Positions 36,190 to 63,985 of a stretch of DNA of 64,000 bases are shown one piece after another. The notes beneath the pieces were generated by a model. The model worked only from the letters and a program-made list of their open reading frames with translations. It had not been told where the DNA came from and searched no databases. Source of the stretch: Marsupella aquatica (taxonomy: Eukaryota > Plantae > Marchantiophyta); assembly GCA_973895155.1 (NCBI GenBank), contig OZ316897.1, positions 9,881,832 to 9,945,831 on the forward strand, read 5' to 3'. The translations under genes and the position numbers were made by a program. How positions within the stretch are numbered: the stretch's first letter is position 1; each line of letters opens with the position of its first letter.

Positions 36190-36600
36190 AAACTCAAACC
36201 AAATCTGATCTTCCAAATGACAATTGCTTTTGATTGATTTACTTTTGCTGTTGGAAAATCAGGAAGAAGCCAAGGTGCAAAGAGCTCGTCCGCAAAATTT
36301 TCAACGTTTGCCAGACGAAATAGTTGCCAAGGATGGTCAAGTGCACAGAATTGTAGCCAGTTGGACAACGCGAGGAAACTAGGTTTAGCAGGGATGGGAG
36401 GACTAGGGATTCACGAAGGCAGTCTTCAAGGCTTTGTGTTTCAAGTTTGAGTATACTTGTGTTCTTCCAAACATGAAGCAAATCGCTGGGACAACAAGGC
36501 GATTCAAAGAGGGCGGTGTGGGAATATATGCATCACCATGGCAAGAAAGTTCAAGTAGTAGGATAAACTTGGTCTAGTCTCAAAGGCAGAGAACTATGGC
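36190..36600 (+). pseudogene. Remnant of a hydrolase-NLR copy (intron 2 end and start of the NB-ARC exon)
   Basis: Clear similarity to 41680-42090 (AAAATCAG|GAAGAA..CCAAGGT..CAAAATTTTCAACG..., TTTGAGTATACTTGT, CATCACCATGGCAAGAAAG), with deletions and frameshifts through the P-loop. Confidence 0.85.
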
Positions 36601-36619: not shown

Positions 36620-39600
36620 GTCTTCTCAATGGAAGCCATTGTACATTGTTGGTCCCATGATTGGATTCGATGGGTCTGTATAGGCGATGACTGTTTCATT
36701 CGTGCATTTATTTTCTTCAACATACTTCTGAACAATGCAAGACCTAAGTGCCTCCATGACTGATCGCCTCGTCTATACCATATACAGCGAACCAGGCAGG
36801 TGATGCAACGATTCACCATCGCACATCTCAAATCTTGCAGCTATTTTATTCATGTATGGAACCAACTCTGCAATCCAGTAATTTGATCTGCCAAGAGCGA
36901 GATCCTCGTTATCTCCGATTGAATTCGTCCAAGTTAACCTGCATGATTGTTGTTTCCTCTCAGGCCTTACCAACAAACTAGCCTCCCGTTTCTATGATGC
37001 CCCTCTCCAAGCGAAGACATGAATCCCTAGCAGTTCTTGGGGTATTGGTTCTTGCTGCTTTGTCGACACCTTTCAATTCCTGGAGCCTTTCTACTCCTAG
37101 ATTTGGAGGTCAATGTTCTGTGTTCCGCTAAATACCCCATCTGAGTGCCATTTGGGCCGGAGTTTTCTTATATTTGTATGCAAGCTCCGGAACTCAACAC
37201 ATTGCTGCAACCCTTCAGGACAGCCATCTTCTCTCCCCACTGAAACTGGTCACTCTCTCTTTCCTGCAACAATCCGATTGTATCTGATCATGGGATGTTC
37301 GATTATGCGGAGCATTATTAGCTCGCGAGAGTTACCAGCTCACAATTTATTGAGTCCAAGGGAACCACTCTAGACTGCAATAGTTACAACTAATTACAAG
37401 GTGAGTTCGCCCCAAGTACGACTAACAGCAGCTACATCCTTTACAGTAGTCAAGAACTCGTGATCGACCACGGCGAAGTGTTAGGATGGCACAGAGTCTC
37501 AACAATTTACTCCTTGGGTAATAATAATGGACTGTCAATGAGCTGTTAGATTGGTGACCATCATTTCGTTCAATTTCACGTTCTTGGAATGGAGTCTTTC
37601 GAACTCATGTTTCATCGTCGCTGGTCAGGTTCGGAACTGCCGGATTAGATTACTGTTGAGAGTAGTTGTAAACGGCGAAAATATGGACTGCTGCTGTGCA
37701 TTGTCCACACTCAGTAAGGGCGGTAGTGTGACCCAACTAGTGATCCCCAGGAGGGCGCTCTCCGTTTTTTACTCGAAAGATTTCCCTCACACATCCTCTC
37801 GCATTTTCAGTGCAGATAGGAACAGCGAAATCAGCTGCCCAGATAAGGTCGGCTTTCCTGTAGCTTGGCTAAGTGTGGAATTACAGTCCTTACAACTTGC
37901 GCTGACCTTAGATTATACGAGTAAGCTCTCCCCAACACGTTTCCCGTAGCTTGGCTACATATGGGATGACTGTCCTCACAACTTGACTAGACCTTGGATT
38001 ATAAAAATAAGCTCTCCCAACTATGACTACGAAAGTTCCTGTAGCCGGCGGGTCCCCAGCTAGTAGTATCGAGAGTGAATGTCCCTCAATCAATTGGTCC
38101 CTCAATCAATCGACCAATCACATAAGTCCTCAAAGTCTATTGATGCCATCTAGACACTGCTCTGTGCCCCTATTCTGTGTGCCTGAAGTAATCGATGGTT
38201 TCCTGCTTTGATTGCAAGGGAATTGCCAAAGATCTCGTGAAGAATTACTCGGACAATGCTTTGGTTCAGTTCATCGAGACCCTCGATCGCTCTTCTCTTG
38301 CTCTCTTGGACCGCATGTTTTACAACAGACGTCTGGCTGCATCGACCGTTGGTTTGACTTCCCTCTCGTTTGAATCACTTTCGTGCGCGGACTGTTTTCG
38401 AATTGTCAAGGATTTGCCTTCGTCCTCCGTTGTATCCTTTCACTGGAAATGATCACCACTTTCGACGAGGCTTGATTGAGGAGTACTTGTTCAACACTGG
38501 GCATCTTTGTCCTTTTGGCCTCATAGCCACTACTTTGATTGCCGGCTTGCTGCGGTTCTCCTCGACAAGGCCACACTTCTCTCAGGTCTAATCAATTGAC
38601 CGAGGAAGCAGCCTCCAGTGATGCACCAGTCCGGCAAAGAGATTTTGGGGCAAACTGGCACGGATTTGTGTTCCCCGTACCCAGAACGAGGCGACGTCAC
38701 GGCGCCGGCTGCGGGTGGAAGCCTCACCGATCGCCATCCACTCTGGCCACATCGAGAGGTGAAAATTATGTAGAACCGTGCCTCCTGACACGTTAATTCA
38801 TAGTTCCTGTTTCCCTCCTAGGAATCCATACTTGAAGCCAGTTTTAATACGTCTATTGACCAATTAGAAGGATGGCTCTGCTCCACTTTCGGAATTACTA
38901 GTGTTTTCAATTCAGCGTACGGTGGTCACTCCCTGAATTACCAGATGTCTTCTTCACTTTACATCGGATGTGATTTAGACGATTAATGAGCTTCCATGCT
39001 GTCCGGCAGGGGTACCTACTGAGTTGCAATTCTATTGGAACAACCACCTGTTCGGAATAGAGTTTGAACAGCTTTTTCTTCCATGGAGACAGTTGGTCGG
39101 CCCCCCTCATCCAATAGTTCTGGGTCAACGAGGATCAACGTACCGTTACGGCAGGTACTCCAAAATTGAGACTTTTGATCTGAGCTCTGTGAACTTTTCT
39201 GTCCAATGCTCCTTCTTTTTGGTCTGCTCATTTGGCCGCGTTCACCACGTCTAAGTCCTTCAGCAGTGGAAGTCTTCGTCAAATCAAGGTTCCAAAAAGC
39301 AACTCCAGTGAGGGCGTAGTTGCCACTTCTAGTGACAGCTCGATTCGTCCAACTGATAGATATGAAGAGTAGCTGCAACTCATTCATTGAGGTCCACCAT
39401 CTCATCTTCTTTGAAGTCCACAGCGCGAGAATCTCTACAACACAAGTGTCTAGGTTTCCGGTGCCAGGGCTTCTAATTTCCAAAGGCATTAACGATTTCC
39501 CCGAGAGTTCCGACTCCATATGGATTCAAACCAATACTAGGATCAAATCACTCTTTCAAATTTGCAAATTCTTGCACGATCAGAGTACTCTCGAAAGCCT

Positions 39601-39860
39601 TCAAAGGTAGTTGGGCGGCTACTTCGATTTGACAATTTCTTTCCTGTTTGAAAGTTAGACCGGATTTATATCAAAAGAAAGTAGACGCACGTGGTCCCAG
39701 CCTAAGCCATGGATGTGACAGAGCTAGGCATCAATGAATGTTAGCGTGAGATCCTTCACCATAGTTTCTTTTTGACAAAATCAAACTGGTTCTTCAAGTC
39801 TGAACTTTCTATCCGACAAGAGTACTCTAGAAAGCCTTTAAAGCCAGTTGTCTCTCAGAT
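36620..39860 (-). pseudogene. Decayed F-box/F-box-associated gene sequence (at least two F-box starts)
   Basis: Minus-strand fragments IEVAAQLPLKAF, LSE*FFTRSLAIPLQS, SWVTLPPL, MMVTNLTA, GTFVVIVGRAYFYNP and YWIAEL, with many stops and frameshifts. Confidence 0.5.
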
Positions 39861-39862
39861 TT

Positions 39863-40100
39863 AGCTTGATGTGATCTGAAAGACGAAAATCCGTTGCTAT
39901 GAATATGCTGGGTTCTTCTTGACAATGGCAATGATCATATGTTTTCATTTTTTAATCTACCACACCGTGCAATTGACATCTACCTGAGTTTCTGAACCGG
40001 TGCTGCTAGTTTCTGCGGCATCGTTGAATCCACTGTACCACCAGTCTTTGTTAGCGAGTTCTCCGCCTTCACACAACTCCATCTTAGTGTAGACGACTTG
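39863..40100 (-). pseudogene. Intronless fragment of a CPK16/18/28-clade calcium-dependent protein kinase
   Basis: VVYTKMELCEGGELANKD..YS..DAA, then in another frame RCQLHGVVD*KMK...IATDFRLSDHIK. Confidence 0.75.
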
Positions 40101-40565
40101 ATAATATGTAGCTAAATGAAGCACAGAATTGGAACACAATTCTACGCCGCAGTAGTCTGTCCAAGCTAGAATTGATTATCGTCTGATATACGCATATCGT
40201 CAGGAGCATCTGCTTGTTTTCTAAAGCTTTCGAAGCCACTTTGGACCAAATAAGCAGATCATTGCCAGAATTCAGTTCAAACATTGTGACACCACAGCTA
40301 TTTTGTGCTTTCTTTGAAGTTATATTGACAACCAATTTGGTGCGGTTGGAGACAACAGTATTCGCTCAATATCTTCTTCTTTGTGTTCCTTTTGGGAGGC
40401 AGCTTGCTAGCTTTTGTGATCGAAAGTAGTCATACCCATGCAAACCCCAATGACTGAACAGAGTGTGGTTGATGTCAAGGGTGTTATTCTCTCTGTGGCA
40501 TCTTGCTTGATACAGTATAAGAGCATAGTCCATGACGTCTCTCTGTTTCTGACTTGTGCTCTTAG

Positions 40566-43500
40566 GTGAACAACTCCTTATATGAAATATACAGAGCAGA
40601 GGGTAAGCCGACCGTACAGATTCTGTTTTTTCATGGCGTACAATCAGTGGAGGACTCGGATGCTCATGTGTCGACGTGGAAGTCCGAAGATGGCTCTGTT
40701 ATTTGGCCACGGGAATGGTTAGGTGAGGCCTTTCCTGGCGCTCATATTTTCACCGTGTCTTACAATGAAAGCATTCGAAACTTGGACATGTTTTTAGTGG
40801 GAGAAAACTTGACTTCGGATTTGATGGATGACGGAATTGGGCAAGTGCCTGATTGCCCAGTTATCTTGGTAGGCTACTGTGTTGGGGGCTTGGTTCTTAA
40901 GCAGACATGCTTGCAAGCAAGGAAGAAGTTCCATTCTGGTAAAACTTCCGCAGTTGAAAGGAAGAAGCTTAAGATGTTTCTGGACAATGTGAGGGGAGTT
41001 TTTTATTACGGTACACCTCATCGTGGGAGCTCTGTAATTGCTAACGTAGCTGATGGCCCGTTGTTCGAATACTTTAAGGTGTTAAATGAAAAAGCAGCAC
41101 GGTTGAATTCAGAGTTTGACGACTTACTGGTATCATATCCAAAGTGGAAGGTCCATGGACTTGGGGAAGGTCTCCCTACAAAATCGGTAAACATTAATAC
41201 TGTGTTTTAATGCTTATCTAATAGCTCGAAAGATTTTCTGTCGCTGTACGGAGTGTCTAGCTTTGTGTATGACATTGTCAATTCATAGAATTGTTTCTGA
41301 AGTGAATATGGCGTTGGAGTGTACTCATTCTAGCATGATTTGAAATCATAGCAAGGAAAGTCTCCGTTAGTTGAAAGATGTGTATTGATATTTATCCTCA
41401 TGTCTTTAGTGCAATCTCGTGTATTATCCTGCCCCCTACTGCGCAGGGCATCTTCCGGGGCCACGTGGTAGTACCTGAAGCTGCTTCAAGAGAAGGGGTG
41501 GAGTTCAATATCGTTGATGCAGATCATAATACCATTTGTCAGCCACCCAGTAAAATGGACAGGAGATTCTATGCTCTGAGAAACCTCATCCATAGCGTTG
41601 TCACCAACATGGAGGTTAGTGGGCTAAATATCATGTATACACACCTGTAATTGTAGTGAGTTGTATTGTGTGTCGTTAACACAACCCAAATCTGATCTCC
41701 CAAATTGCAACTGATCTGGATGCCTATTGGCTTTTGCTGTTGTAAAATCAGGAAGAAACCAAGGTCCAAGAAGCTCGTCCACAAAATTTTCAACGTCCAC
41801 AAAATTTTCAACCTTTGCCAAAGGACATAGTTGGTATGGAAATCGTGCACAGCATTGTGGCCAAGTTATCCGACGCGAGGAAGCTAGGCTTAACAGGGAT
41901 GGGAGGATTAGGGAAGACCACTTTCTCGAAGGCGGTCTTCAATCATTTGTGCTCAAAGTTTGAGTATACTTGTTTTGTTTCAAATATGAAGGTTGTTGCT
42001 GGGACAGAGCAGGCTGCAAAGGATGCGGTGTGGGAACACATGCATCACCACGGCAAGAAAGTCGAAAGAGGGAAAAGTTGGGGTAGTCTCCGAGGCCGAG
42101 AATTATTGCTTGTTTTAGATGACATCTCTCTGAACGATGTAAAAGTTTTACTGGAATTAGCTGATGTTTCAGCTCCAGAAAGTAGATTCATTGCGACCTC
42201 TCGTAATGAAGACCATTTGGGCAGCTTGGATAGAGTTTTTGTTGTTCCTTTCTTGTACAGTACGAACGCAGAAGCATTATTCATCAAGTGTGCGTTTCCA
42301 AACCAAGCAGTACCACCCCTGGAGTTGCAAACTGTTATGAAAGATATTATCAGTAAGTGTGGTGGGTTGCCTCTTACATTGGAAGTTCTAGGAAAGTACT
42401 TGAAGAGGAAAAGAGACGTCGAGCACTGGGAGCAGACTCTGAGTGCACTCAAAAACGCAGAGGAAATAAGCAGCTTGAATGAGAGGTTATGGGAAAAACT
42501 ACGGCTGAGTTTTGATGATCTGACCGATATTGAGCAGCAGATGTTCTTGGATGCTGCGACGTATTTCTCCACGAGCAAAGGATATGGTTTGAGGGTATGG
42601 ACGTTAAGAGAAGCCAAGGTAGCATGGGGGGCAGCTTATGGTGGAAGCGAACAGCTACTTTGGCAAACATTGGTGGACAGATCTCTTGTATACTCGGTCG
42701 GCGAAAATGACGCTATCAAACTACATGAACAGCTGCAGAGCTTGGGACAAAAGATAGCACGTGAGGCAAGTAATATAGGCAAGTCCAGGGTTTGGGACGG
42801 GGAGGTGGGATTCAAAATGCTCCAAACTACCACCGAAGAGTTGGATGGACAGGTACGTCGCATAATGAAATGTTCGGGACAAATATGATGTGTTCTTGAA
42901 GGTTATGTGGCTTGCATTTGAGAAGTAGCTGCTGTTATGCAGAGTAGAAATTATGAGTTTGAGAAGTAGCTGCTGTTATGCAGAGTAGAAATTATGAGTT
43001 TGAGAAGTATTTGTTCAATCGTGGCAGATCTGGGATGTGCTGGTCAATTGGTTTCCATGTCCACATAACCATGACGAAGGTTGTCCTTTTAAAGGATATT
43101 TTTCTGAGCCGACTAGTGTTGTGGATCTGACATGCAGGGAATTCACGCCTTTCGGGTGCGTTCATGGCCTGGCACAGAGATCACCCTCGACTGCATCCAG
43201 CTGCCCAAAACCATTCTTTCTAGACTCAAGAAAGTGCAGTTCTTGGAGGCAACCCGTCGGGTCACAATTGATGGCTCCAGGGATGGTGCGTCAGTACCAA
43301 CCGAGGTTGTCTTGCTCAGATGTGTTGAACAAGACCTTTTCAACCCAGCTCTCCAGACTCGCTTGGCCGTTTTGGATCTGGAGTGGTGGGTGCGGCGAGA
43401 CCCACTTCCCCCTTCTATTGGGCAACTGGAGTGCTTAAAGGATCTCAAGATCACAGGCTATAAAGCGCGAACGGTTCCGAGTGCCTTCGGGCAACTCAGA

Positions 43501-44571
43501 TCCTTGCAACGGCTCACCTTTTCTACTTCGTTGTCCTTGGAAAGTTTGCCAGAATCCTTTGGACAATTGGCCTCCTTGAACTATCTTAAATTCGATGCGT
43601 GCTTCGCGTTGCACAGCTTGCCAGATTCCTTTGGACAATTGTCCTCCTTGAATTATCTTGATTTCTATTCCTGCATTAGTTTGCACAGCTTGCCGGAATC
43701 CTTCGGGCAGCTCAAGGCGTTGCAGCTGCTGCAATTACGGATGTGTCCACTATTGAGAAGCCTTCCTGAATCCTTTCGGCAACTTGTCACATTAACCGAC
43801 CTGGAATTACGATGCGAAAATTTGCGCTACCTCCCTGAATCCCTCGCCCATCTCACCAAACTGGAACGGCTGGCCATAGACGTCGACATGGAGACGTTGC
43901 CGGATTTCGTCGGAGACTTCAAGGCTCTGCATGATCTGGAAATTGGTTATTATTCTGCTACAAGCATTCCAGACTCGATCAAATTTTTGCCGTCATTGCA
44001 GACTTTTACGCTCGTCTTTCGACATGATCTGGTGGAGCCACTGCCACCATGGTTGAAGACATGGAAGGTGCCGAGTATACGTGTAGGGAACATAATGGGC
44101 TTTATTAGTATAGGAGTTGGATGCTTCTTTTGTGAAGACACCGGAATCAATTGGTATCTAGACTCATGCGAGCTCAGTCGTGAACTCCGTCCCGAAGAGT
44201 CCCGGAGAGGAGCCTTAGTGAGGCACGCACTAGTGTGTACCAGAGTATTGCTAGAGATATTAATGGAGGAGCTCGAGGAGTTCGAAAGCAATAAGTCAGG
44301 GTCCCTTTCTGACTTAGTGATAAGGCAGCGAAAGTTAGGATTACAATTAGTCGAGAGTTGTCAAAAACAGAAAGCTTTAGCCTTCCAATTAATCGAGAGT
44401 TGCAAAAATCAGGACCCAGTGCTTGATGAGTTAATAAGGAGAAGGCACGTAGAATTATGGGAGATAGTCGGCAGAATTATGCGAAGCAGAAGGCATTTAG
44501 AGGCAGTTTCTCATTTAGAGGCAGTTTCTCATTTAGAGGCTAAAAGTGGGAGACGGTGCTCACTCTTTTAA
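40566..44571 (+). CDS. Alpha/beta-hydrolase-NB-ARC-LRR immune receptor, copy A (start codon not resolved)
   Basis: Phase-0 exons 40566-41186, 41447-41614, 41752-42852 and 43138-44571. SERAC1-like hydrolase (FFHG, WPREWL, GTPHRGS, DH..IC.P); P-loop GMGGLGKTT, LLVLDD, SRFIATSR, GGLPL and LHE; about 9 LPESFGQL-type LRRs. Confidence 0.9.
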
Positions 44572-49369: not shown

Positions 49370-51190
49370 TGAGTGTCCCTGAATCAATTGACCAGTAACA
49401 AAAGTCCCCTAAGGCTCTTGATGCCTTCCAGACACTACCATGTTCCCCTATTTTGTTTGCCTTGAACGAAGTTTGATATAAATATGAATTAATCGATGGC
49501 TTTCCTGCTTTGATTGCAAGGGAATCGCCATGATTGCAAGGGAATCGCCAAACAGTTCGTGAGGAATTCCTTGGAAAATGATTTGATTCATAGAGACCTG
49601 GATCGCTCTTGTCTTGCTCTCCGCATGTTTTGGGCCTGAGTCTGGCTGTGTGGTACAGCCCACTCTCAGTTTTGTGCGATGACTGTCGTCGAACATTCAA
49701 GGATCTGCCTTCATCATCCGTTGTATCCGTCAACTGGTAATGATCACCAGTTATCGAGCCGTTCTTTCTTATCTATCTTAGTGCAGTGCCCGGACCGGCG
49801 GCTCGGACAGGAACGATGACTGGAGGTGCGTAAGCCGAAGCCGAGGGTCGAGGATTGATTTAGGTTTCCATGTTCAACACTCAACACTGGGCATCTTTGT
49901 CTTTTTGTCCTTTTGGCTTCATATACGTGTTTTGATTGCGGCCTTGCTGCACTTTACTTCGACAAGGCCACACTCTCGGGTCGAATCAATTCACCAAGGA
50001 GGCAGCAGATGGACCGGTCCGGCAAAGAGATCCGCGACAATCTGGCACGGATTTGTGTTTCCGTCACCCAGAACGAGGCGAACTCACGGCGCCGACTCCG
50101 GGTGGAAGCCTCCCCGATCGACATCCACTCTGGCCACATTGAGAGGTACAAACTATGTAGAGCCTTGTAACCGTAGACTTCAATTCATAGTTGCTGTTTC
50201 CCTCGTAGGAAACCTTACTTGAAGCCAGGTTCAATACATTTTTGACCAATTAGAAAGATCCTCTTCTTCACTTTCGCAATTACTGTTGCTTCAAGTCAGG
50301 TATGGTGGGCACTCCCGAAATTACCGGATCATCCTTGACTTTCCGTCGGCTGTGATTCCGACTATTAATGAGCTACCATGCTGTCATGCAGGCCTACCCA
50401 CTGAGTTGCAATTCAATCGGAAGAACCAGCTGTTCGGAACAAAGAGTTCGAATTCTTCCCTGGAGATGGGTCTTCTTACTTGGGTGCTAGTACCCCTGGC
50501 AATCGCTGCGATGCTGGCTGCCAGATACCACGAAGCCGGGCTCTCAGATGTACACCTGTGCGCCTTGTTCGCGATATGCTTTCTGACTCTCTTGCTGTAT
50601 CAGCGAAGCAAGTCATTTGGTTGGCATCTGGTTCGGCCCTCCTCACCCAATAGTGCTGTGTCAACGAGGATCAACGTACCGTTACGGAAGGTAATCCAAA
50701 GTTGAGACTTTTGACCTTAGCTTCTGTGAACGTTTCTGTCCAACGCTCCTTCTTGGTCAGCTCACTGGCCGCTTTCACCTTAATGAAGTCCTTCAGCAGT
50801 GGGAAGTCTTCGTCAAATCAAGTTTGCAAATGTGCAGCTGCAGTGAGGGCGTAGTTTACTTCTAGGGACAGATATATTCCTCCAACTAATAGATATGAAG
50901 AGTGGCTGCAACATATTCATTGAGGTCCACCAGTTCATCTTCTTTAAAGTCCACAGCCGTGAGAATCTCTTCAACAAAAAACTCTAGCTTTCCGGTGCCA
51001 GGGCTTATAATTTCCAAACGCAGTATTGATTTCCCCAAGAGTTCCGGCTCCATATGGCTTCAAACCAATACAAGGATCAAATCGTTCCTTCAAATTTTTC
51101 AATTTCTTGCGCGATCAGAGTACTCTCGAAAGCCTTTTAAGGTTTTGGGTAAAGGAGGCTACTTCGATTTGACAATTTCCTTCATATGGA
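49370..51190 (-). pseudogene. Second copy of the decayed F-box mosaic
   Basis: Collinear with about 38080-39640. Contains SMNQIIFQGIPHELFGDSLA..PLQS, an F-box-like motif. Confidence 0.5.
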
Positions 51191-52071: not shown

Positions 52072-55000
52072 GTGAACAACTCCTTATATGAAATCTACAG
52101 AGCAGAGGGTAATCCGACCGTACAGGTTCTGTTTTTTCATGGCCTACAATCGGTGGAGGACTCAGATGCGCATGTGTCGACCTGGAAGTCCGAAGATGGC
52201 TCTCTTATTTGGCCACGGGAATGGTTAGCTCAGGCCTTTCCTGGCGCTCATATTTTCACCGTGTCTTATAATCAAGGTGTTCGAAACTTCGACATGGTTT
52301 TAGTGGGAGAAAACTTGACTTCAGATTTGATGGATGGAGGAATTGGGCAAGTGCCTTATTGCCCAGTTATGTTGGTAGGCTACTGTGTTGGGGGCTTGGT
52401 TCTTAAGCAGATATGCTTGCAAGCAAGGAAGAAGTTCTTTTCTGGTAAAACTTCCACAATTGACAAGGAGAAGCTTGGGAGGTTTCTGGACAATGTGAAG
52501 GGAATTTTCTATTACGGTACACCTCATCGTGGGAGCTCTGTGATTGATAACATAGCTGATGGCCCTTTGTTCAAATACTTCAAGGTCTTAAACAAGAAGG
52601 CAGCACGGTTGAATTCAGACTTTGACGACTTACGGGTTTCATATCCAAAGTGGAAGGTCTATGGACTTGGGGAAAGTGTGCCTACGATATCTGTAAGCAT
52701 GGATATCGTACCTTCTCTGATTGTTGTTATTATCGTCCCTCGTTGAGCTTAGGGAGTATCTTTGTGTATGACACAGTCAATCATTTGATGCACCAAATAC
52801 ACATTTACTTTTCGGTTTGGTGAGTAGGCAACTTGCTTGAATGCAAGTTTTGTGTCGAGTGAAGATGCCGTTGGTGTTCTTACGATGCTTCTAGCACGAT
52901 TTAACTCCATAACAACGAAAGTCTGCGCAAAATATTGACAACTTTGGTAAGCTCAGAGATGATTAAAGAAAAGGAAATCTATTCTCATATCTTTGGTGCA
53001 ATTTCTTGTGTGTTACATGTCCGCGTTACAAGGGCCTGTTCCAGAGCCTCGTAGTAGCTGTACCTGAAGGTACTTCAAGAGAAGGGGATGAGTTCCATGT
53101 AGTTGAGGCAGACCACAATTCAATATGCCAGCCACGAAATAAAGTGGATAGGAGATTCTACGCTCTCAAGAATCTGATCGATAGCATTCTCATTAACGTG
53201 GAGGTAAAGTTCGCTTTGTCAATATGCTAGAAGAAGGCGCCCTTAGTCATAATGGGTCAATTGTGTGTTCTCCTAATTTTAGTGATTTAAATTGTTTTTC
53301 CTTACCCGGAAAGCTCTATTTGATACAATGAATATTAATACACCTTTCGGTGTTGGGAAAAATCAGGACGAGAAAAAAGTGCGGGAAAAAAGTTCTTTGC
53401 AAGACGCTCATCCAGATAATTTCCAGCTTTTGCCTGAGGAAATAGTTGGCATGGACGCTCAAGTGCAAGTCATTGTGGGCAAGTTGGTTCGCGTGAGGAA
53501 ACTTGGCTTTGCAGGGATGGGAGGATTGGGGAAGACCACTCTCGCAAAGGCAGTCTTCAATCATTTGTGCTCTAGATTTGAGTATACTTGTTTTGTTCCC
53601 GATATGAAGCTAATCGCTGGGTCACCAAGCGATGCAATGCAAGCAATATGGGAACAAATGCATCACCATGGCAAGAAAGTGGGAAGAGAGTCTAGTTTTA
53701 GAGGCAAAGAATTATTGCTTGTTTTAGACGACATCTCTCTTCGAGATGAGAAAGTTTTACGGGAATTAGCTCATGCTTCAGCTCCAGAAAGCAGATTCGT
53801 TGCGACCTCTCGTAATGAAGACTATTTGAGCAACTTGGATGAAGTTTTTGATGTTCCTTTCTTGCAAAGTAAGAACGCAGAAGAATTATTCATCAGGTAT
53901 GCTTTTCCAAACCAAGCAGTCCCACCGCTGGAATTGCAAACTGTGATGAACGATATTATCGAGAAGTGTGATCGGTTGCCTCTTACATTGGAAGTTCTAG
54001 GAAAGTACCTGAAGAGGAAAAGAGACGTCGAGCATTGGGAGCAGACTTTGAGTGCACTCAAAAACGCAGAGGAAATAAGCAGCTTGAATGAGAGATTATG
54101 GGAAAAACTACGGCCCAGTTTTGATGATCTGAGCTATACTGAGAAGCAGATCTTCTTGGATGCTGCGACGTTTTTCTCCACGATCGAAGGATCCACTTTC
54201 GGAAGATGGACGTTAAGAGAAGCCAAGGCAGCATGGAGGGCAGCTTATGGTGGAAGCGAACAGCTACTTTGGCAAACATTGGTGGACAGATCTCTTGTGT
54301 ACTCTGTCGGCGAAAACGACACTATCAAACTTCATGAACAGCTGCAAAGCTTGGGACAAAAGATAGCACGTGAGCCAAGTAATATTAGCAAGTGCAGGGT
54401 CTTCGACGGAAAGGTGGGATTAAAAATGCTCCAAAATACCACCGAAGAGTTGGGTGGACAGGTACGTCGCATAATTAAATTTACAGGACAAATTATGATG
54501 TGCTCTTGAAGGTTGTGTGGCGTGCATTTGAGAAGTAGCTGCTGTGATGCAGAGTAGAGTTTCAAAGCATTTTTTCAATCATGGCAGATCTGCGATGTGC
54601 TGGTGAATTGGTTTCCATGTCCACATAACCATGACGACAGTCGTCGCTTGAATGACTCTTTTCTGAGCCGACTGGTGTTGTGGTTTTGACATCCAGGAGA
54701 TTCATGCCCTTCGGGTGGATTTGGGTTCACCTTTTTCACCGCCCACCCAGCTCCCAAAAGCCGCTCTTTCTAAACTCAAGAAAGTGCAGTTCTTCGAGGC
54801 AGATGGTCCTGTCACAATTGACGGCTCCAGGGATGGTGCGTCAGTCCTAACCGAGGTCGTTCTGCTCGGATGTGTTGGTCAACACCTTTTTAACCCAGAT
54901 CGCCAAATTCGACTGGCCGTTTTGGATCTCAACTGGCCGCTGGAAGACCCGCTGCCAAGTTCTATTGGGCAACTGGAGCGCTTAAAGCATCTGAAGATCA

Positions 55001-55902
55001 ACTACTATCTAGCGGGGACGGTTCCGAGTACCTTCGGGCAACTGAGGTCCCTGCAACGGCTCACCATTAATTTTGCCGTTTGCTTGGAAAGTTTGCCAGA
55101 GTCCTTTGGACAGTTGTCCTCTTTGAATTATCTTAAATTCGTTGGCTGCTTGGACTTGCACAGCTTGCCTGAGTCCTTCGGAGATCTCAAGGAGTTGCAC
55201 TCGCTGGAATTCACTCAACTTGAAAAATTGGAAAGCTTGCCTGCATCCTTCGGACGGCTTAGGCAGTTACAGTCGCTGAAATTCAATTCGTGTTCAAAAT
55301 TGACAAGCTTGCCTGAATCCTTCGGGCAGCTCAAGGCGTTACACCTGCTGCAATTACGTTTGTGTCCAGTATTGATAAGACTGCCTGAATCCTTTGGGCA
55401 ACTTATCACGTTAACCGACTTAGAATTACAATGCCAGAATTTGCGCTACCTCCCTGAATCTTTTGGGCATCTCACAAAACTGCAACGGTTGGCGACAGAC
55501 GTCAACATCGAGAGTCTGCCGGATTCAGTCGGAAACTTCAAGGCTCTGCGTGATCTGGTCATTGGTTATTATTCTGCTTCAAGCATTCCCGACTGGATCA
55601 AATTTTTGCCGTCATTGGAGACACTCACTCTCTTCTTTCATCGTGATATGGTGGAGCCACTGCCACCATGGTTGATGACACCGAATGTGCCAAGTAAACT
55701 TTCTTCAGGAGCAAGAATTCTCTTTAGAGTACTAGATGGGGGCTTCTTCTTATCTTTAAAGCGCGATGCAATTGACGTTACAAGGATGAAACAAGACTTG
55801 TCGAGTTTGCTAGAGTTGAATGCGAAGAACTCATTGAGTTCGGTAGACTTTAGTAGGAAGGCAAAAGATATTTTGGGAGTACATATTGAGAAACCTCAGT
55901 GA
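52072..55902 (+). CDS. Alpha/beta-hydrolase-NB-ARC-LRR immune receptor, copy B (start codon not resolved)
   Basis: Exons 52072-52692, 53033-53203, 53367-54461 and 54697-55902. Same motifs as copy A, except GLPL reads RLPL; about 10 LRRs. Confidence 0.88.
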
Positions 55903-58289: not shown

Positions 58290-59140
58290 GTGGAGATGAG
58301 TGTCCCTATGGTCCCCTAAAGCTATTGATGCCTTCTAGACACGGTGCGCTATTTTGTTTGCCTTATACGGAGTTCGACTTATTATGAATTCATCGATCGA
58401 TGGTTTTCCTGCTTTGATTGCAGGGGAATCGCAAAAGACTTAGTGAAGAATTCCTCGGAAAATGATTTGATTCTGTACATAGAGACCCCCGATCGCTCTT
58501 CTCTTGCTCGCCTTAGCGTTCGTGGACCGCATGTTTTGGGCCAGAGTCTGGCTGCGTCGATCCTCTGTGGGACAACCCTGTCGTTTCAATCAGGTCTGCG
58601 CGATGACTGGTTTCGAACATTCAAGGATCTGCCTTCCTCATCCGTTGTATCCTTCAACTGATAATGATCACCACTGTCGAGCCGAGCTATCCGGGCTTTC
58701 GTTCTTATCTATCTTATTGCAGTGGCCGGACCGGCGCGTCTACAGGAACGATAACTGGAGGTGCGTAATGCCGAAGCCGAGGGTCGTGGCTTGATTGAGG
58801 TTTACATCTTCAACACTCGGCATCTTTGTCCTTTTGTCCTTTTGGCGTCGTAGCCCTTGTTTTGATTGCGGCCTTGCTGTACTTTACCTCGACAAGGACA
58901 CACTTCTCGCAGGTCGAATCAATTTACCGAGGAGGCAGCCTCCAATTTAGATGGACCGGTCCGGCAAAGAGATTCGTGACAAACTGGCACGGATTTGTGT
59001 TTCCCTCACCTAGAACGAGGCGAAGTCACGGCGCCGGCTCCGGGTGGAAGCTCGCCATCCACTCTGGCCACATCGAGAGGTAGAAATTATGTAGAACCGT
59101 GCCTCCGTCGACGTTAATTTATAGTTGCTGTTTCCCTCGG
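58290..59140 (-). pseudogene. Third, truncated copy of the F-box mosaic
   Basis: Collinear with about 38120-38820 and 49400-50205, then joins directly to NLR intron-1 sequence. Confidence 0.5.
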
Positions 59141-59335
59141 TGAGTCAAGTGTCAACGTCAAGTGAAGATGCCGTTGGTGTTCTTACGATGCTTCTAGCAC
59201 GATGTAACTCCATAACAACGAAAGTCTGCGCAAAATATTGACAACTTTGGTAAGCTCAGAGATGTTTAAAGAAAAGGAAATTCATTCTCATATCTTTGGT
59301 GCAATTTCTTGCGTGTTACATGTCCGCGTTACGAG

Positions 59336-62187
59336 GGCCTGTTCCAGAGCCCCGTAGTAGCTGTACCTGAAGCTACTTCAAGAGAAGGGGATGAGTTCCA
59401 TGTAGTTGCTCAGGCAGACCACAATTCAATATGCCAGCCACGAGATAAAGTGGATAGGAGATTCTCCGCTCTCAAAAACCTCATCGATAGCATTCTCATT
59501 AACGTGGAGGTAAAGTTCGCTTTATAAATATGCTAGAAGAAGGCGCCCGCAGTCATAATGTGTCAAACTGTGTGTTCTCCTAATTTTGTGATTTAAATTG
59601 TTTTTCCTTACCCGGAAGGCGCTATTTGATACAATCTATATTAATACACTTTTCGTTGTTGGGAAAAATCAGGAAGAGAAAAAAGTGCGGGAAGAAAGTT
59701 CTTTGCAAGACGCTCATCCAGATAATTTCCAGCTTTTGCCTGAGGAAATAGTTGGCATGGACGCCCAAGTCCGAGCCATTGTGGGCAAGTTGGTTAGCGT
59801 GAGGAAACTTGGCTTTGCAGGGATGGGAGGATTGGGGAAGACCACTCTCGCAAAGGCAGTCTTCAATCATTTGTGCTATAGATTTGAGTATACTTGTTTT
59901 GTTCCCGATATGAAGCTAATCGCTGGGTCACCAAGGGATGCAATGCAAGCAATATGGGAACATATGCATCACCATGGCAAGAAAGTGGAACGAAAGTCTA
60001 GTTTAAGAGGCAAAGAGTTGTTACTTGTTTTAGACGACATCTCTCTTCGAGATGAGAAAGTTTTACGTGAATTAGCTCATGATTCAGCTCCAGAAAGCAG
60101 ATTCATTGCGACGCTCGTGATGAAGACCTTTTGAGGAGCTTAGATGAGGTTTTTGTTGTTCCTTTCTTACAAAGTAATAATGCAGAAGCATTATTCTTGA
60201 AGTGTGCCTTTCCGAACCAAGCAGTCCCAGCCCCGGAGTTGGAAATTGTTATAAACGAGATTATTATGCAATGTGCTGGGTTGCCTCTTACATTGGAAGT
60301 TCTCGGAAAGTTCTTGAAGAGGAAAACAAAGGTCGAGGCCTGGGAGCAGACTCTGGAAGCACTCAGAGAAGCAGAGGAAATAAGCAGTTTGAATGAGAGA
60401 TTATGGGAAAAACTACGGCCAAGTTTTGATGATCTGACCGATATTGAGCAGAAGATCTTCTTGGATGCTGCGACGTTTCTCCCCACGAGGCCCGCCACGA
60501 GCGGATGGACTTTCAGAAGATGGACGTTAACCGAAGCCAAGGCAGCATGGAAGGAAGCTTATGGTGAAAGCGAACAGCTACTTTGGGACACATTGGTGGA
60601 CAGATCTCTTGTGTACTCTGTCGACGACAACGACACGATCAAAGTACATGAACAGCTGCAAAGCTTGGGACAAAAGATAGCACGTGAGCCAAGTAATATT
60701 GGCAAGTGCAGGGTTTGGGATGGGGAGGTGGGGTGCAAAATGCTCCAAACGACCACCGAAGAGTTGGATGGCGAGGTACGTCGCGTAAGCAAATTTACAG
60801 GACAAATATGATGTGCTCTTGGAGGTTATGTGGCCTGCATTTGAGAAGAAGCTGCTGTGATGCAGAAATTGATGAGTTTGGAAAGCATGTGTTCAGTCAT
60901 GGCAAATCTGGGATGTGCTGGTCATTTGATTTCCATGTCCACATAACCATGACGACAGTCGTCCCTTGAATGATTTTTGTCTGAGCCGACGGGTGTCGTG
61001 GTTTTGACATGCAGGGAATTCATGCCTTGCGGATGAGTACACCCACTGATACAAAGTGCATCCAGCTCGCAAAAGCTGCTCTTTCTAAACTCAAGAAAGT
61101 GCAGTTCTTGGAGTCAGATGGCCCTGTCACAATTGATGGCTCTAGGGATGGTGCGTCAGTGCCAACCGAGGTTGTCTTGCTCAGATGCGTTGGTCAAGAC
61201 CTTTTTAACCCAACTCTCCAGACTCGGCTGGCCATTTTGGATCTTGAGTGGCCGCTGGAAGACCCGCTTCCCCCGTCTATTGAGCAACTGGAGCGCTTAA
61301 ATCATCTGAAGATCAGCAACTATCTAGCGCGGACGGTTCCGAATTCCTTCGGGGCACTGAGGTCCCTGCAACAGCTCACTATTCATTTTGCGGTTTCCTT
61401 GGAAGGCTTGCCAGAATCGTTTGGAGATTTGTCCTCGTTGAAGTATCTTAAATTCGTTGCCTGCTTGAACTTGCACAGCTTGCCTGAGTCCTTCGGACAC
61501 CTCAAGGAGTTATGCTTGCTGGAATTCCGTGTGTGTCCAAGATTGGAAAGCTTGCCTGAATGCTTCGGGGAGCTTTCCAAATTAACCGAGTTGGCCTTAG
61601 AATGCGAAAATTTGGGCTACCTCCCTGAATCCTTTAAGGATCTCACAAAACTGCAACGGTTGAAGATAGACGCCAACATTGAGACGTTGCCGGATTCAGT
61701 CGGACACTTCGAGGCTCTGCATGATCTGGAAATTGCTTATCATTCAACTACAAGCATTCCACACTGGATCAAAACTTTGCCGTCATTGCAGACACTGAGA
61801 CTCGTCTTTCGTCGTGATCTGGTGGAGCCCTTGCCACCGTGGTTGATGACACCGAATTTGCAGAGTAAAGTTTCTTCAGGAGCAAGAATTGTCTTTACAG
61901 TACGAGATGGGGAATTCTTATTTGCGAACCTCGAAGCACATTGGCAGGTGGACATGATCTCACGAAAAATTATGAGTTGTGTAGACACGATTTCACGAAG
62001 AGGACCTTTGTGTTTGATCGAAGAGATCTCACGAAACTTCGACCAGTGGAGAGTTGTCTCACGAATCTTATGGAGTTTGGTAGACTTCAGTAGGATCCCA
62101 GGAAAAGAAGCCCACAGTTTAGTAAAAGAGATGCTCGTAAGTACGACAAATATATATCAAAATTTGCTAAACACAAAGGGAACATAA
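59336..62187 (+). pseudogene. Hydrolase-NLR copy C: main hydrolase exon deleted, 1-nt frameshift in RNBS-B
   Basis: Exons approx. 59336-59509, 59672-60775 and 61015-62187. GCGACGCTCGTGATGAAGAC versus GCGACCTCTCGTAATGAAGAC in copies A and B splits the ORF (59598-60134 and 60131-60811); about 8 LRRs. Confidence 0.85.
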
Positions 62188-63688: not shown

Positions 63689-63985
63689 ATAACAAGAGCA
63701 ATGTTCTCTAAAAAATATGATTTCCAATTGATGAGTTTGAAAAGCATGTCTTCAATCATGCAGATCTGAGATGTGCTGGTGCATTGGTTTCCATGTCCGC
63801 ATAACCATGACGACAATCGTTCCTTGAATGATTGTATAACAAGAGCAATGTTCTCTAAAAAATATGATTTCCAATTGATGAGTTTGAAAAGCATGTGTTC
63901 AATCATGGCAGATCTGGGATGTGCTGGTGAATTGGTTTCCATGTCCACATAACCATGACGACAATCGTTCCTTGAATGATTGTCT
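63689..63985 (+). repeat. Two 147-bp tandem units derived from NLR intron 3
   Basis: GATGAGTTTGAAAAGCATGT..GCAGATCTG.GATGTGCTGGT...CATAACCATGACGACA matches the intron preceding the LRR exon (about 43000-43080, 54560-54660 and 60870-60975). Confidence 0.85.

Follow-up and report, generated by a model that had tools for sequence, protein, structure and literature searches.

A cysteine at the predicted nucleophile elbow of tandem liverwort hydrolase-NLR genes and its recurrence among related domains

Receptors of the NLR type (nucleotide-binding domain with leucine-rich repeats) that carry a hydrolase domain ahead of the NB-ARC and leucine-rich repeat (LRR) regions, known as Hyd-NLRs, have been described in liverworts as HNL genes, with phase-0 introns inside the hydrolase domain and before the NB-ARC (Xue et al., 2012, PMC3352924). 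Two Hyd domains of Marchantia polymorpha, Mp3g20180 and Mp4g22030, both listed in the construct table with the elbow GHSYGG, trigger cell death resembling the hypersensitive response (HR) in Nicotiana benthamiana, in work that left the catalytic residues of the domain unmutated (Chia et al., 2024, PMC11218826), and a review states that little is known of the biochemistry of the hydrolase domain (PMC10952240). The papers on HNL and Hyd-NLR genes (PMC3352924, PMC11218826) do not discuss the nucleophile residue, and no earlier mention of a cysteine nucleophile in Hyd-NLRs was found in the searchable literature. Here we analyse a tandem cluster of such genes on the forward strand of a 64,000-nucleotide stretch of the liverwort Marsupella aquatica (contig OZ316897.1, positions 9,881,832 to 9,945,831; 45% GC), referred to below as the window and numbered from its first letter. 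Two of its copies, A and B, have exons for hydrolase part 1, hydrolase part 2, NB-ARC and LRR, in that order, in a single gene, that is, the Hyd-NLR architecture, and share both phase-0 introns with the HNL genes (PMC3352924); they differ from the HR-positive Marchantia domains (PMC11218826) in their elbow, which reads GYCVGG and would place a cysteine where the catalytic serine is usually found. The receptor class is already known; the novelty lies in a Ser/Cys/Gly/Asp polymorphism that runs through the whole family at the catalytic position, together with its codon logic.

Outside the receptors, serine esterases of the DUF676, PGAP1 and SERAC1-like kind (PF05057, PF07819) share with relatives of the window domain the GH-nucleophile-xGG elbow, the HG motif, the TPHxGS loop and a lipase-like fold, and Marchantia homologues bear the NCBI name “protein SERAC1”. 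The window domain departs from them in its cysteine nucleophile, in the tyrosine that replaces the preceding histidine, and in reaching no Pfam threshold: its hydrolase exons matched neither DUF676 nor PGAP1 (the best Pfam hit, Cutinase, was sub-threshold at E=0.032), and DUF676 was matched by 9 of 26 short relatives (best 4.6e-10). With a profile made from full-length relatives, NB-ARC and LRR matches drowned out all others, for which reason a second was built from short, hydrolase-only relatives; this one brought elbow and TPHxGS loop into alignment with staphylococcal lipase 2 (TPHNGS). A search of exon 1 against PDB sequences with phmmer gave no match. EDS1 and PAD4, like the window genes, bring a lipase-like α/β-hydrolase into plant immunity, but as separate proteins with an EP domain instead of an NB-ARC fusion, and their likeness to the window domain is at the level of the fold. 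The catalytic triad of EDS1 is conserved yet dispensable for immunity.

Translation places GYCVGG exactly at 40872-40889 in copy A (ggc tac tgt gtt ggg ggc) and at 52378-52395 in copy B, with TGT as the cysteine codon in both (40878-40880 and 52384-52386), as the first-pass annotation of the window had reported. The string VGYCVGGLVLKQ is found in both copies, and the serine elbow G-H-S-x-G-G is absent from both. The hexapeptide fits the elbow pattern small-x-nucleophile-x-small-small, and it is not a chance motif, because the 208-residue exon of copy A that contains it matches 1018 proteins at E<=1e-3, 92 of them at E<=1e-30, and the cysteine aligns to their nucleophile column. By these alignments the cysteine occupies the nucleophile position of a lipase-like α/β-hydrolase domain whose other catalytic motifs are kept. 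In copy A, hydrolase exon 1 (40566-41186, 207 codons) encodes the FFHG oxyanion-hole motif after strand β3 (40626-40637, 80 codons 5' of the elbow), the lipase-family hallmark loop TPHRGS after β6 (41013-41030) and, at the end of β7, the Glu of GLGE (41166-41168), a candidate catalytic acid that is 91% conserved overall. Hydrolase exon 2 (41447-41614, 56 codons) encodes VVPEAAS (Glu at 41477-41479) and DADHNTICQP (its DH..IC.P motif at 41522-41545, His at 41525-41527). The corresponding exons of copy B lie at 52072-52692, with 83% amino acid identity to copy A, and at 53033-53203, where the histidine motif reads EADHNSICQ (His codon 53114-53116). Both FFHG and the DH..IC.P histidine are thus present in the two copies, as had been claimed, with the qualification that the histidine motif sits in the exon following that of the elbow, beyond a phase-0 intron. 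Conserved acid candidates, besides the Glu of GxGE after β7, are the Glu of VVxE and the Asp preceding the His.

The distribution of the residue was followed by searching 1.84 billion representative proteins with copy A exon 1 (phmmer) and analysing the best 150 of the 1018 hits, which comprise 166 domains. The window's own proteins were absent from the database searched; the best full-length relative was the Hyd-NLR P0002 of Calypogeia fissa, 62% identical to copy A, and matches of the hydrolase exon to Hyd-NLRs reached 2e-79. Among the 159 domains with an aligned residue, the nucleophile column holds Ser in 76, Cys in 54, Gly in 17, Asp in 11, Thr in one and Ala in none. Cysteine occurs in C. 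fissa, Marchantia paleacea, M. polymorpha, Riccia fluitans, R. sorocarpa and the moss Ceratodon purpureus. On a quick IQ-TREE phylogeny of 146 domains, built with the nucleophile column removed and with support given by the Shimodaira-Hasegawa-like approximate likelihood ratio test (SH-aLRT), the Cys label requires 26 changes, and branches with SH-aLRT >= 95 impose at least 12 of these, interchanges of Ser and Cys; the Gly label needs nine and the Asp label three. Well-supported sister domains differ as Ser versus Cys with no other systematic change between them. Copies A and B group with P0001, P0002 and P0004, two of these partners coming from Logan assemblies and one from C. fissa, in a clade that is entirely Cys (SH-aLRT 96-98 for the inner four members, 86 where P0004 joins) and is itself nested in a 37-member clade that is mostly Ser. 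The residue is thus conserved across species in the window lineage, yet, with this nesting and its recurrence across the tree, it does not define a clade. The first-pass annotation had taken it as the mark of an NLR subclade, a view that does not hold for a polyphyletic and far more widespread character present in liverworts and a moss; nor is the cysteine confined to two paralogues under relaxed selection.

Codons at the nucleophile position, read in ten fetched loci, point to how such exchanges may come about. Serine is encoded by AGT six times, by AGC twice, and by TCC and TCG once each; the other codons are TGT or TGC for Cys, GGT for Gly and GAC for Asp. A switch between the AGY and TCN serine sets requires two changes (PMC6872785), and Cys TGY offers a single-step bridge because it lies one change away from both AGY and TCY. 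Neighbouring Hyd-NLR paralogues of C. fissa (contig L001, 10613 and 16414) share the identical elbow VLVGHSFGGL, but one paralogue writes its serine as TCC and its neighbour as AGC. In M. paleacea, protein P0003 (contig L009, 10001-16449) contains three successive hydrolase domains whose elbow codons are TGC, TGC and TCG; the same protein carries a Peptidase_C14 (caspase-like) domain in place of the NB-ARC. The family appears, from these codons, to take the TGY path between the serine sets, and with both sets and a cysteine bridge at one catalytic site it clearly illustrates, in living species, the two-serine-codon problem, the subject of Brenner's “two serines” idea. Mutation alone would favour another outcome, since AGY reaches GGY by a transition but TGY by a transversion; Cys is nonetheless three times as common as Gly, and this excess, with the complete absence of Ala, suggests that the nucleophile side chain matters.

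The reading we favour, to which we give a probability of about 0.55, is that the cysteine is a tolerated and probably still nucleophilic thiol variant of one and the same executioner domain, neither a dead enzyme nor a separate chemistry. A lipase-like α/β-hydrolase head fused to NB-ARC and LRR carries GYCVGG as its nucleophile elbow, with Cys for the usual Ser; the replacement is a single first-position change, AGT to TGT, and has been repeated many times, in both directions, across bryophyte Hyd domains. The hydrolase heads would be brought together upon NLR oligomerisation, with the Cys thiol acting as the nucleophile of the same esterase/lipase-type domain. The basis for this reading is that Cys types keep the HG motif, the His loop and the Glu residues and evolve at the rate of Ser types. 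The His is kept in 39/40 Cys and 52/53 Ser types, the VVxE Glu in 38/40 and 49/53, and the HG in 48/49 and 67/71, respectively; terminal branch lengths do not differ (0.315 for Cys and 0.353 for Ser), and the share of 40 conserved positions retained is 0.902 in Cys and 0.907 in Ser types. AlphaFold2 models of two Cys-type relatives, P0023 of C. fissa (503 residues; predicted local distance difference test score, pLDDT, 84) and P0106 of R. sorocarpa (300 residues; pLDDT 85, predicted template modelling score 0.88), are canonical α/β-hydrolases in which a strand leads into the HG loop, the Cys is flanked by a strand and a long helix, and the loop after the last strand contains the His. The two classes differ at the β7 Glu, which is kept in 61/61 Ser types and 33/39 Cys types, with about four independent losses (naive Fisher p = 0.003, phylogeny ignored). 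Because this Glu is lost in six of 39 Cys types and in no Ser type, the pattern would fit a Cys-His pair that needs the acid less.

Several points weigh against this reading. Gly types, which have no nucleophile, keep the His (14/15), the VVxE Glu (14/15) and a Ser-like share of conserved positions (0.907), so that conservation of the triad partners cannot prove catalysis, and part of the selected function of the domain is probably independent of the nucleophile. By matching of N-termini, the Cys-type proteins P0075 (GHCYGG) and P0145 (CHCFGG) are Mp1g10650 and Mp4g08270, both of which were scored “No” for HR, the two positives being of the Ser type (PMC11218826); Mp4g08270 raised ion leakage, albeit variably (p=0.036; PMC11218826). 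Four Ser-type constructs were also HR-negative (PMC11218826), and for this reason the count of 0/2 Cys against 2/6 Ser decides nothing. Copies A and B, moreover, are known from DNA only and their first exons are putative; the structural models are those of relatives and not of the window's own protein; and the comparison covers the best 150 of 1018 hits. The suggestion in the first-pass annotation that the domain is not catalytically dead is partly supported, by the retained catalytic motifs and the lack of decay; conservation of the His does not prove catalysis. Observed here are the position and distribution of the cysteine, its recurrence, the conservation of its partner residues and the codons; we infer both that the thiol is used catalytically and that catalysis matters for signalling. 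The common and recurrent Cys swap amounts to a natural test of whether hydrolase-NLRs need enzyme activity: for the mechanism of Hyd-NLR signalling, natural Ser, Cys, Gly and Asp nucleophile variants are at hand, some between close sisters and some within the transformable M. polymorpha, and as they occur in domains with an HR read-out, the need for catalysis is directly testable.

It is possible, though we lean against it, that the hydrolase head is non-catalytic, serving as a scaffold, a lipid or ligand binder or an oligomerisation surface in the manner of EDS1/PAD4, and that the elbow needs merely a small residue, among which Ser, Cys, Gly and Asp drift. The 18% of domains with Gly or Asp at the elbow, the good conservation of the Gly types, the HR-negative outcome for most of the Marchantia Hyd domains tested, whether Ser or Cys, and the dispensable triad of EDS1 are what such a head would lead one to expect. 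It accounts less well for the residues at the elbow, where Ala is never seen, Thr is seen once and the ratio of Cys to Gly is 3:1 despite the mutational bias, or for the fate of the partner residues once the nucleophile is gone. Asp types, which form two to three clades and are the most diverged class (P0067, P0084, P0131, P0122, P0133, P0008, P0093, P0144, P0149), retain the catalytic His in none of the six scorable cases, diverge faster and keep fewer conserved positions (0.867, p=0.02), with the VVxE Glu kept in 5/6 and the HG in 11/11; to judge from these losses, they look like true pseudo-enzymes. In Gly types the HG has decayed in 7/17 (10/17 kept). The loss of His in Asp types and of HG in Gly types, with the absence of Ala, the rarity of Thr and the excess of Cys over Gly, suggests that a working nucleophile keeps the partner residues in place.

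Two further proposals would grant the cysteine a meaning of its own. We consider it unlikely that the Ser/Cys toggling is adaptive, whether through a changed chemistry (a thioester intermediate, with acyl transfer or another substrate) or as an arms-race response to covalent trapping by pathogen molecules, with distinct outputs for Cys and Ser types. That Cys types as such represent a distinct chemistry and a new NLR output, be it a dienelactone-hydrolase-like lactonase, thioester acyl transfer or a redox switch, as the first-pass annotation had proposed, seems to us quite improbable. The proposal draws on dienelactone hydrolase, whose elbow G-Y-C-L-G-G and Cys-His-Asp triad (PMC4108320) place a Cys nucleophile in an α/β-hydrolase fold within a hexapeptide nearly identical to GYCVGG, and the selective loss of the β7 Glu in Cys types is a hint of dyad-type chemistry. 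There is, however, no detectable sequence relationship between that enzyme and the window domain: the DLH family of Pfam was matched neither by the window exons nor by the 26 short relatives, and neither the VIA-wide nor the Foldseek PDB structure search listed a dienelactone hydrolase among its top 50. The best structural match of the model of a Cys-type relative was PlaB of Legionella pneumophila (6zth; Z 17.6 over 230 residues, root-mean-square deviation 3.8), followed by a wide range of lipases, esterases and thioesterases; PlaB, at 15% identity, exceeds dozens of generic α/β-hydrolases (Z 14-16) by only about 1-2 Z units and is, unlike the window domain, a bacterial Ser enzyme and not part of an NLR. 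Tyr directly before the nucleophile accompanies Cys (5/54) no more often than Ser (8/76). The likeness to dienelactone hydrolase is thus, by these comparisons, best regarded as convergent and limited to the elbow. Close sisters that swap Ser and Cys without other systematic change also speak against a separate chemistry, and the occurrence of Gly and Asp variants, with Gly types as conserved as Ser types, leaves the proposed new output unsupported.

Constraint on the two copies bears on whether the cysteine could be a lesion. Both keep 36 of the 37 family-conserved positions of exon 1, the sole departure being the His-to-Tyr change directly before the Cys, and all 35 differences between A and B in this exon fall outside conserved positions. 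Ratios of nonsynonymous to synonymous divergence (dN/dS, Nei-Gojobori) between the copies are 0.50 for exon 1 (p=0.02 against neutrality), 0.28 for exon 2, 0.52 for the NB-ARC and 0.52 for the LRR, with a synonymous excess in each exon (p = 0.023 to 0.0002); constraint on the hydrolase head matches that on the other parts of the gene, and the domain is not decaying. That copies A and B are nevertheless decaying or unexpressed and the Cys a neutral lesion, for which one could cite the broken third copy, the frameshifted related contig L011 with its HG changed to QG and GYCVGG kept, and an exon 1 that starts without ATG behind putative first exons, is very improbable given four homologous exons open in both copies, purifying selection in every one of them, substitutions that avoid the conserved positions, and a Cys common to intact genes of other species.

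The remaining exons complete the genes as follows. In copy A, exon 1 stops at 41186, between two codons (TCG/GTAAAC, the slash marking the junction), making the intron within the hydrolase phase 0, and exon 2 is bordered by cag/GGC and GAG/GTGAGT, with phase-0 introns on both sides. The NB-ARC exon follows at ~41689-42885 (Pfam NB-ARC 6.6e-24; tblastn with P0002), a third intron lies between 42885 and 43132, that is, after the NB-ARC, and the LRR exon runs from 43132 to the stop codon at 44571 (Pfam LRR_14 8.1e-25). In copy B, the NB-ARC exon lies at 53358-54494 and the LRR exon at 54685-55752. Copy C is a remnant (59324-62010, with 58311-59139) comprising hydrolase exon 2, an NB-ARC with a frameshift near 60113 and an LRR; about 2.6 kb equivalent to 38817-41387 of copy A, which include the first exon and the elbow exon, have been deleted. 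The first-pass description of two intact copies accordingly applies to the four homologous exons of A and B, beside a third copy that is broken.

For the 5' ends, a candidate first exon of copy A lies at 39083-39154 (24 residues from an ATG, donor CAG/GTACTC, phase 0) and one of copy B at 50466-50690 (75 residues, donor AAG/GTAATC); their last ~15 residues are homologous. The copy B candidate includes about 166 nt (50466-50632 versus 39090-39096) with no counterpart in copy A, which encode two hydrophobic, possibly membrane-spanning, segments. The C. fissa N-terminus, used as a homology query for the first exon in the window, found no match. An open reading frame beginning with ATG at 40438 was rejected as first exon because copy B carries frame-breaking 1- and 2-nt indels there. 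The acceptor of hydrolase exon 1 in copy A, tcttag/GTGAAC, is the junction used in an annotated C. fissa gene. The closest relative of A and B is contig L011 (Logan SRR18067352, 2618-3240), colinear and 73% identical in DNA, in which a frameshift lies beside an oxyanion motif that reads FFQG, GYCVGG is retained, and the GTG that begins exon 1 in the window is replaced by ATG; the contig probably represents a pseudogene or an error of assembly. The idea that this ATG is a start lost in A and B was set aside because of the annotated C. fissa acceptor.

Divergence between A and B is uneven along the gene: dS amounts to 0.165 for hydrolase exon 1, 0.645 for exon 2 and 0.41 for the LRR, intron 1 can hardly be aligned, and the 1.4 kb upstream is 78% identical. 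This unevenness suggests patchy gene conversion between the paralogues. An element of about 90 nt occurs in the NB-ARC/LRR intron of A (42990-43077) and of B (54557-54663), and twice in tandem near the window end (63726-63813 and 63873-63961), at 87-93% identity, which exceeds that of the neighbouring exons. An Rfam scan of the whole window, this element included, gave no match; the element may be mobile and small, or else a conserved component of the intron or a mini-exon. An isolated NB-ARC fragment covering the P-loop region lies upstream of copy A, at 36260-36590, and resembles the end of contig L011.

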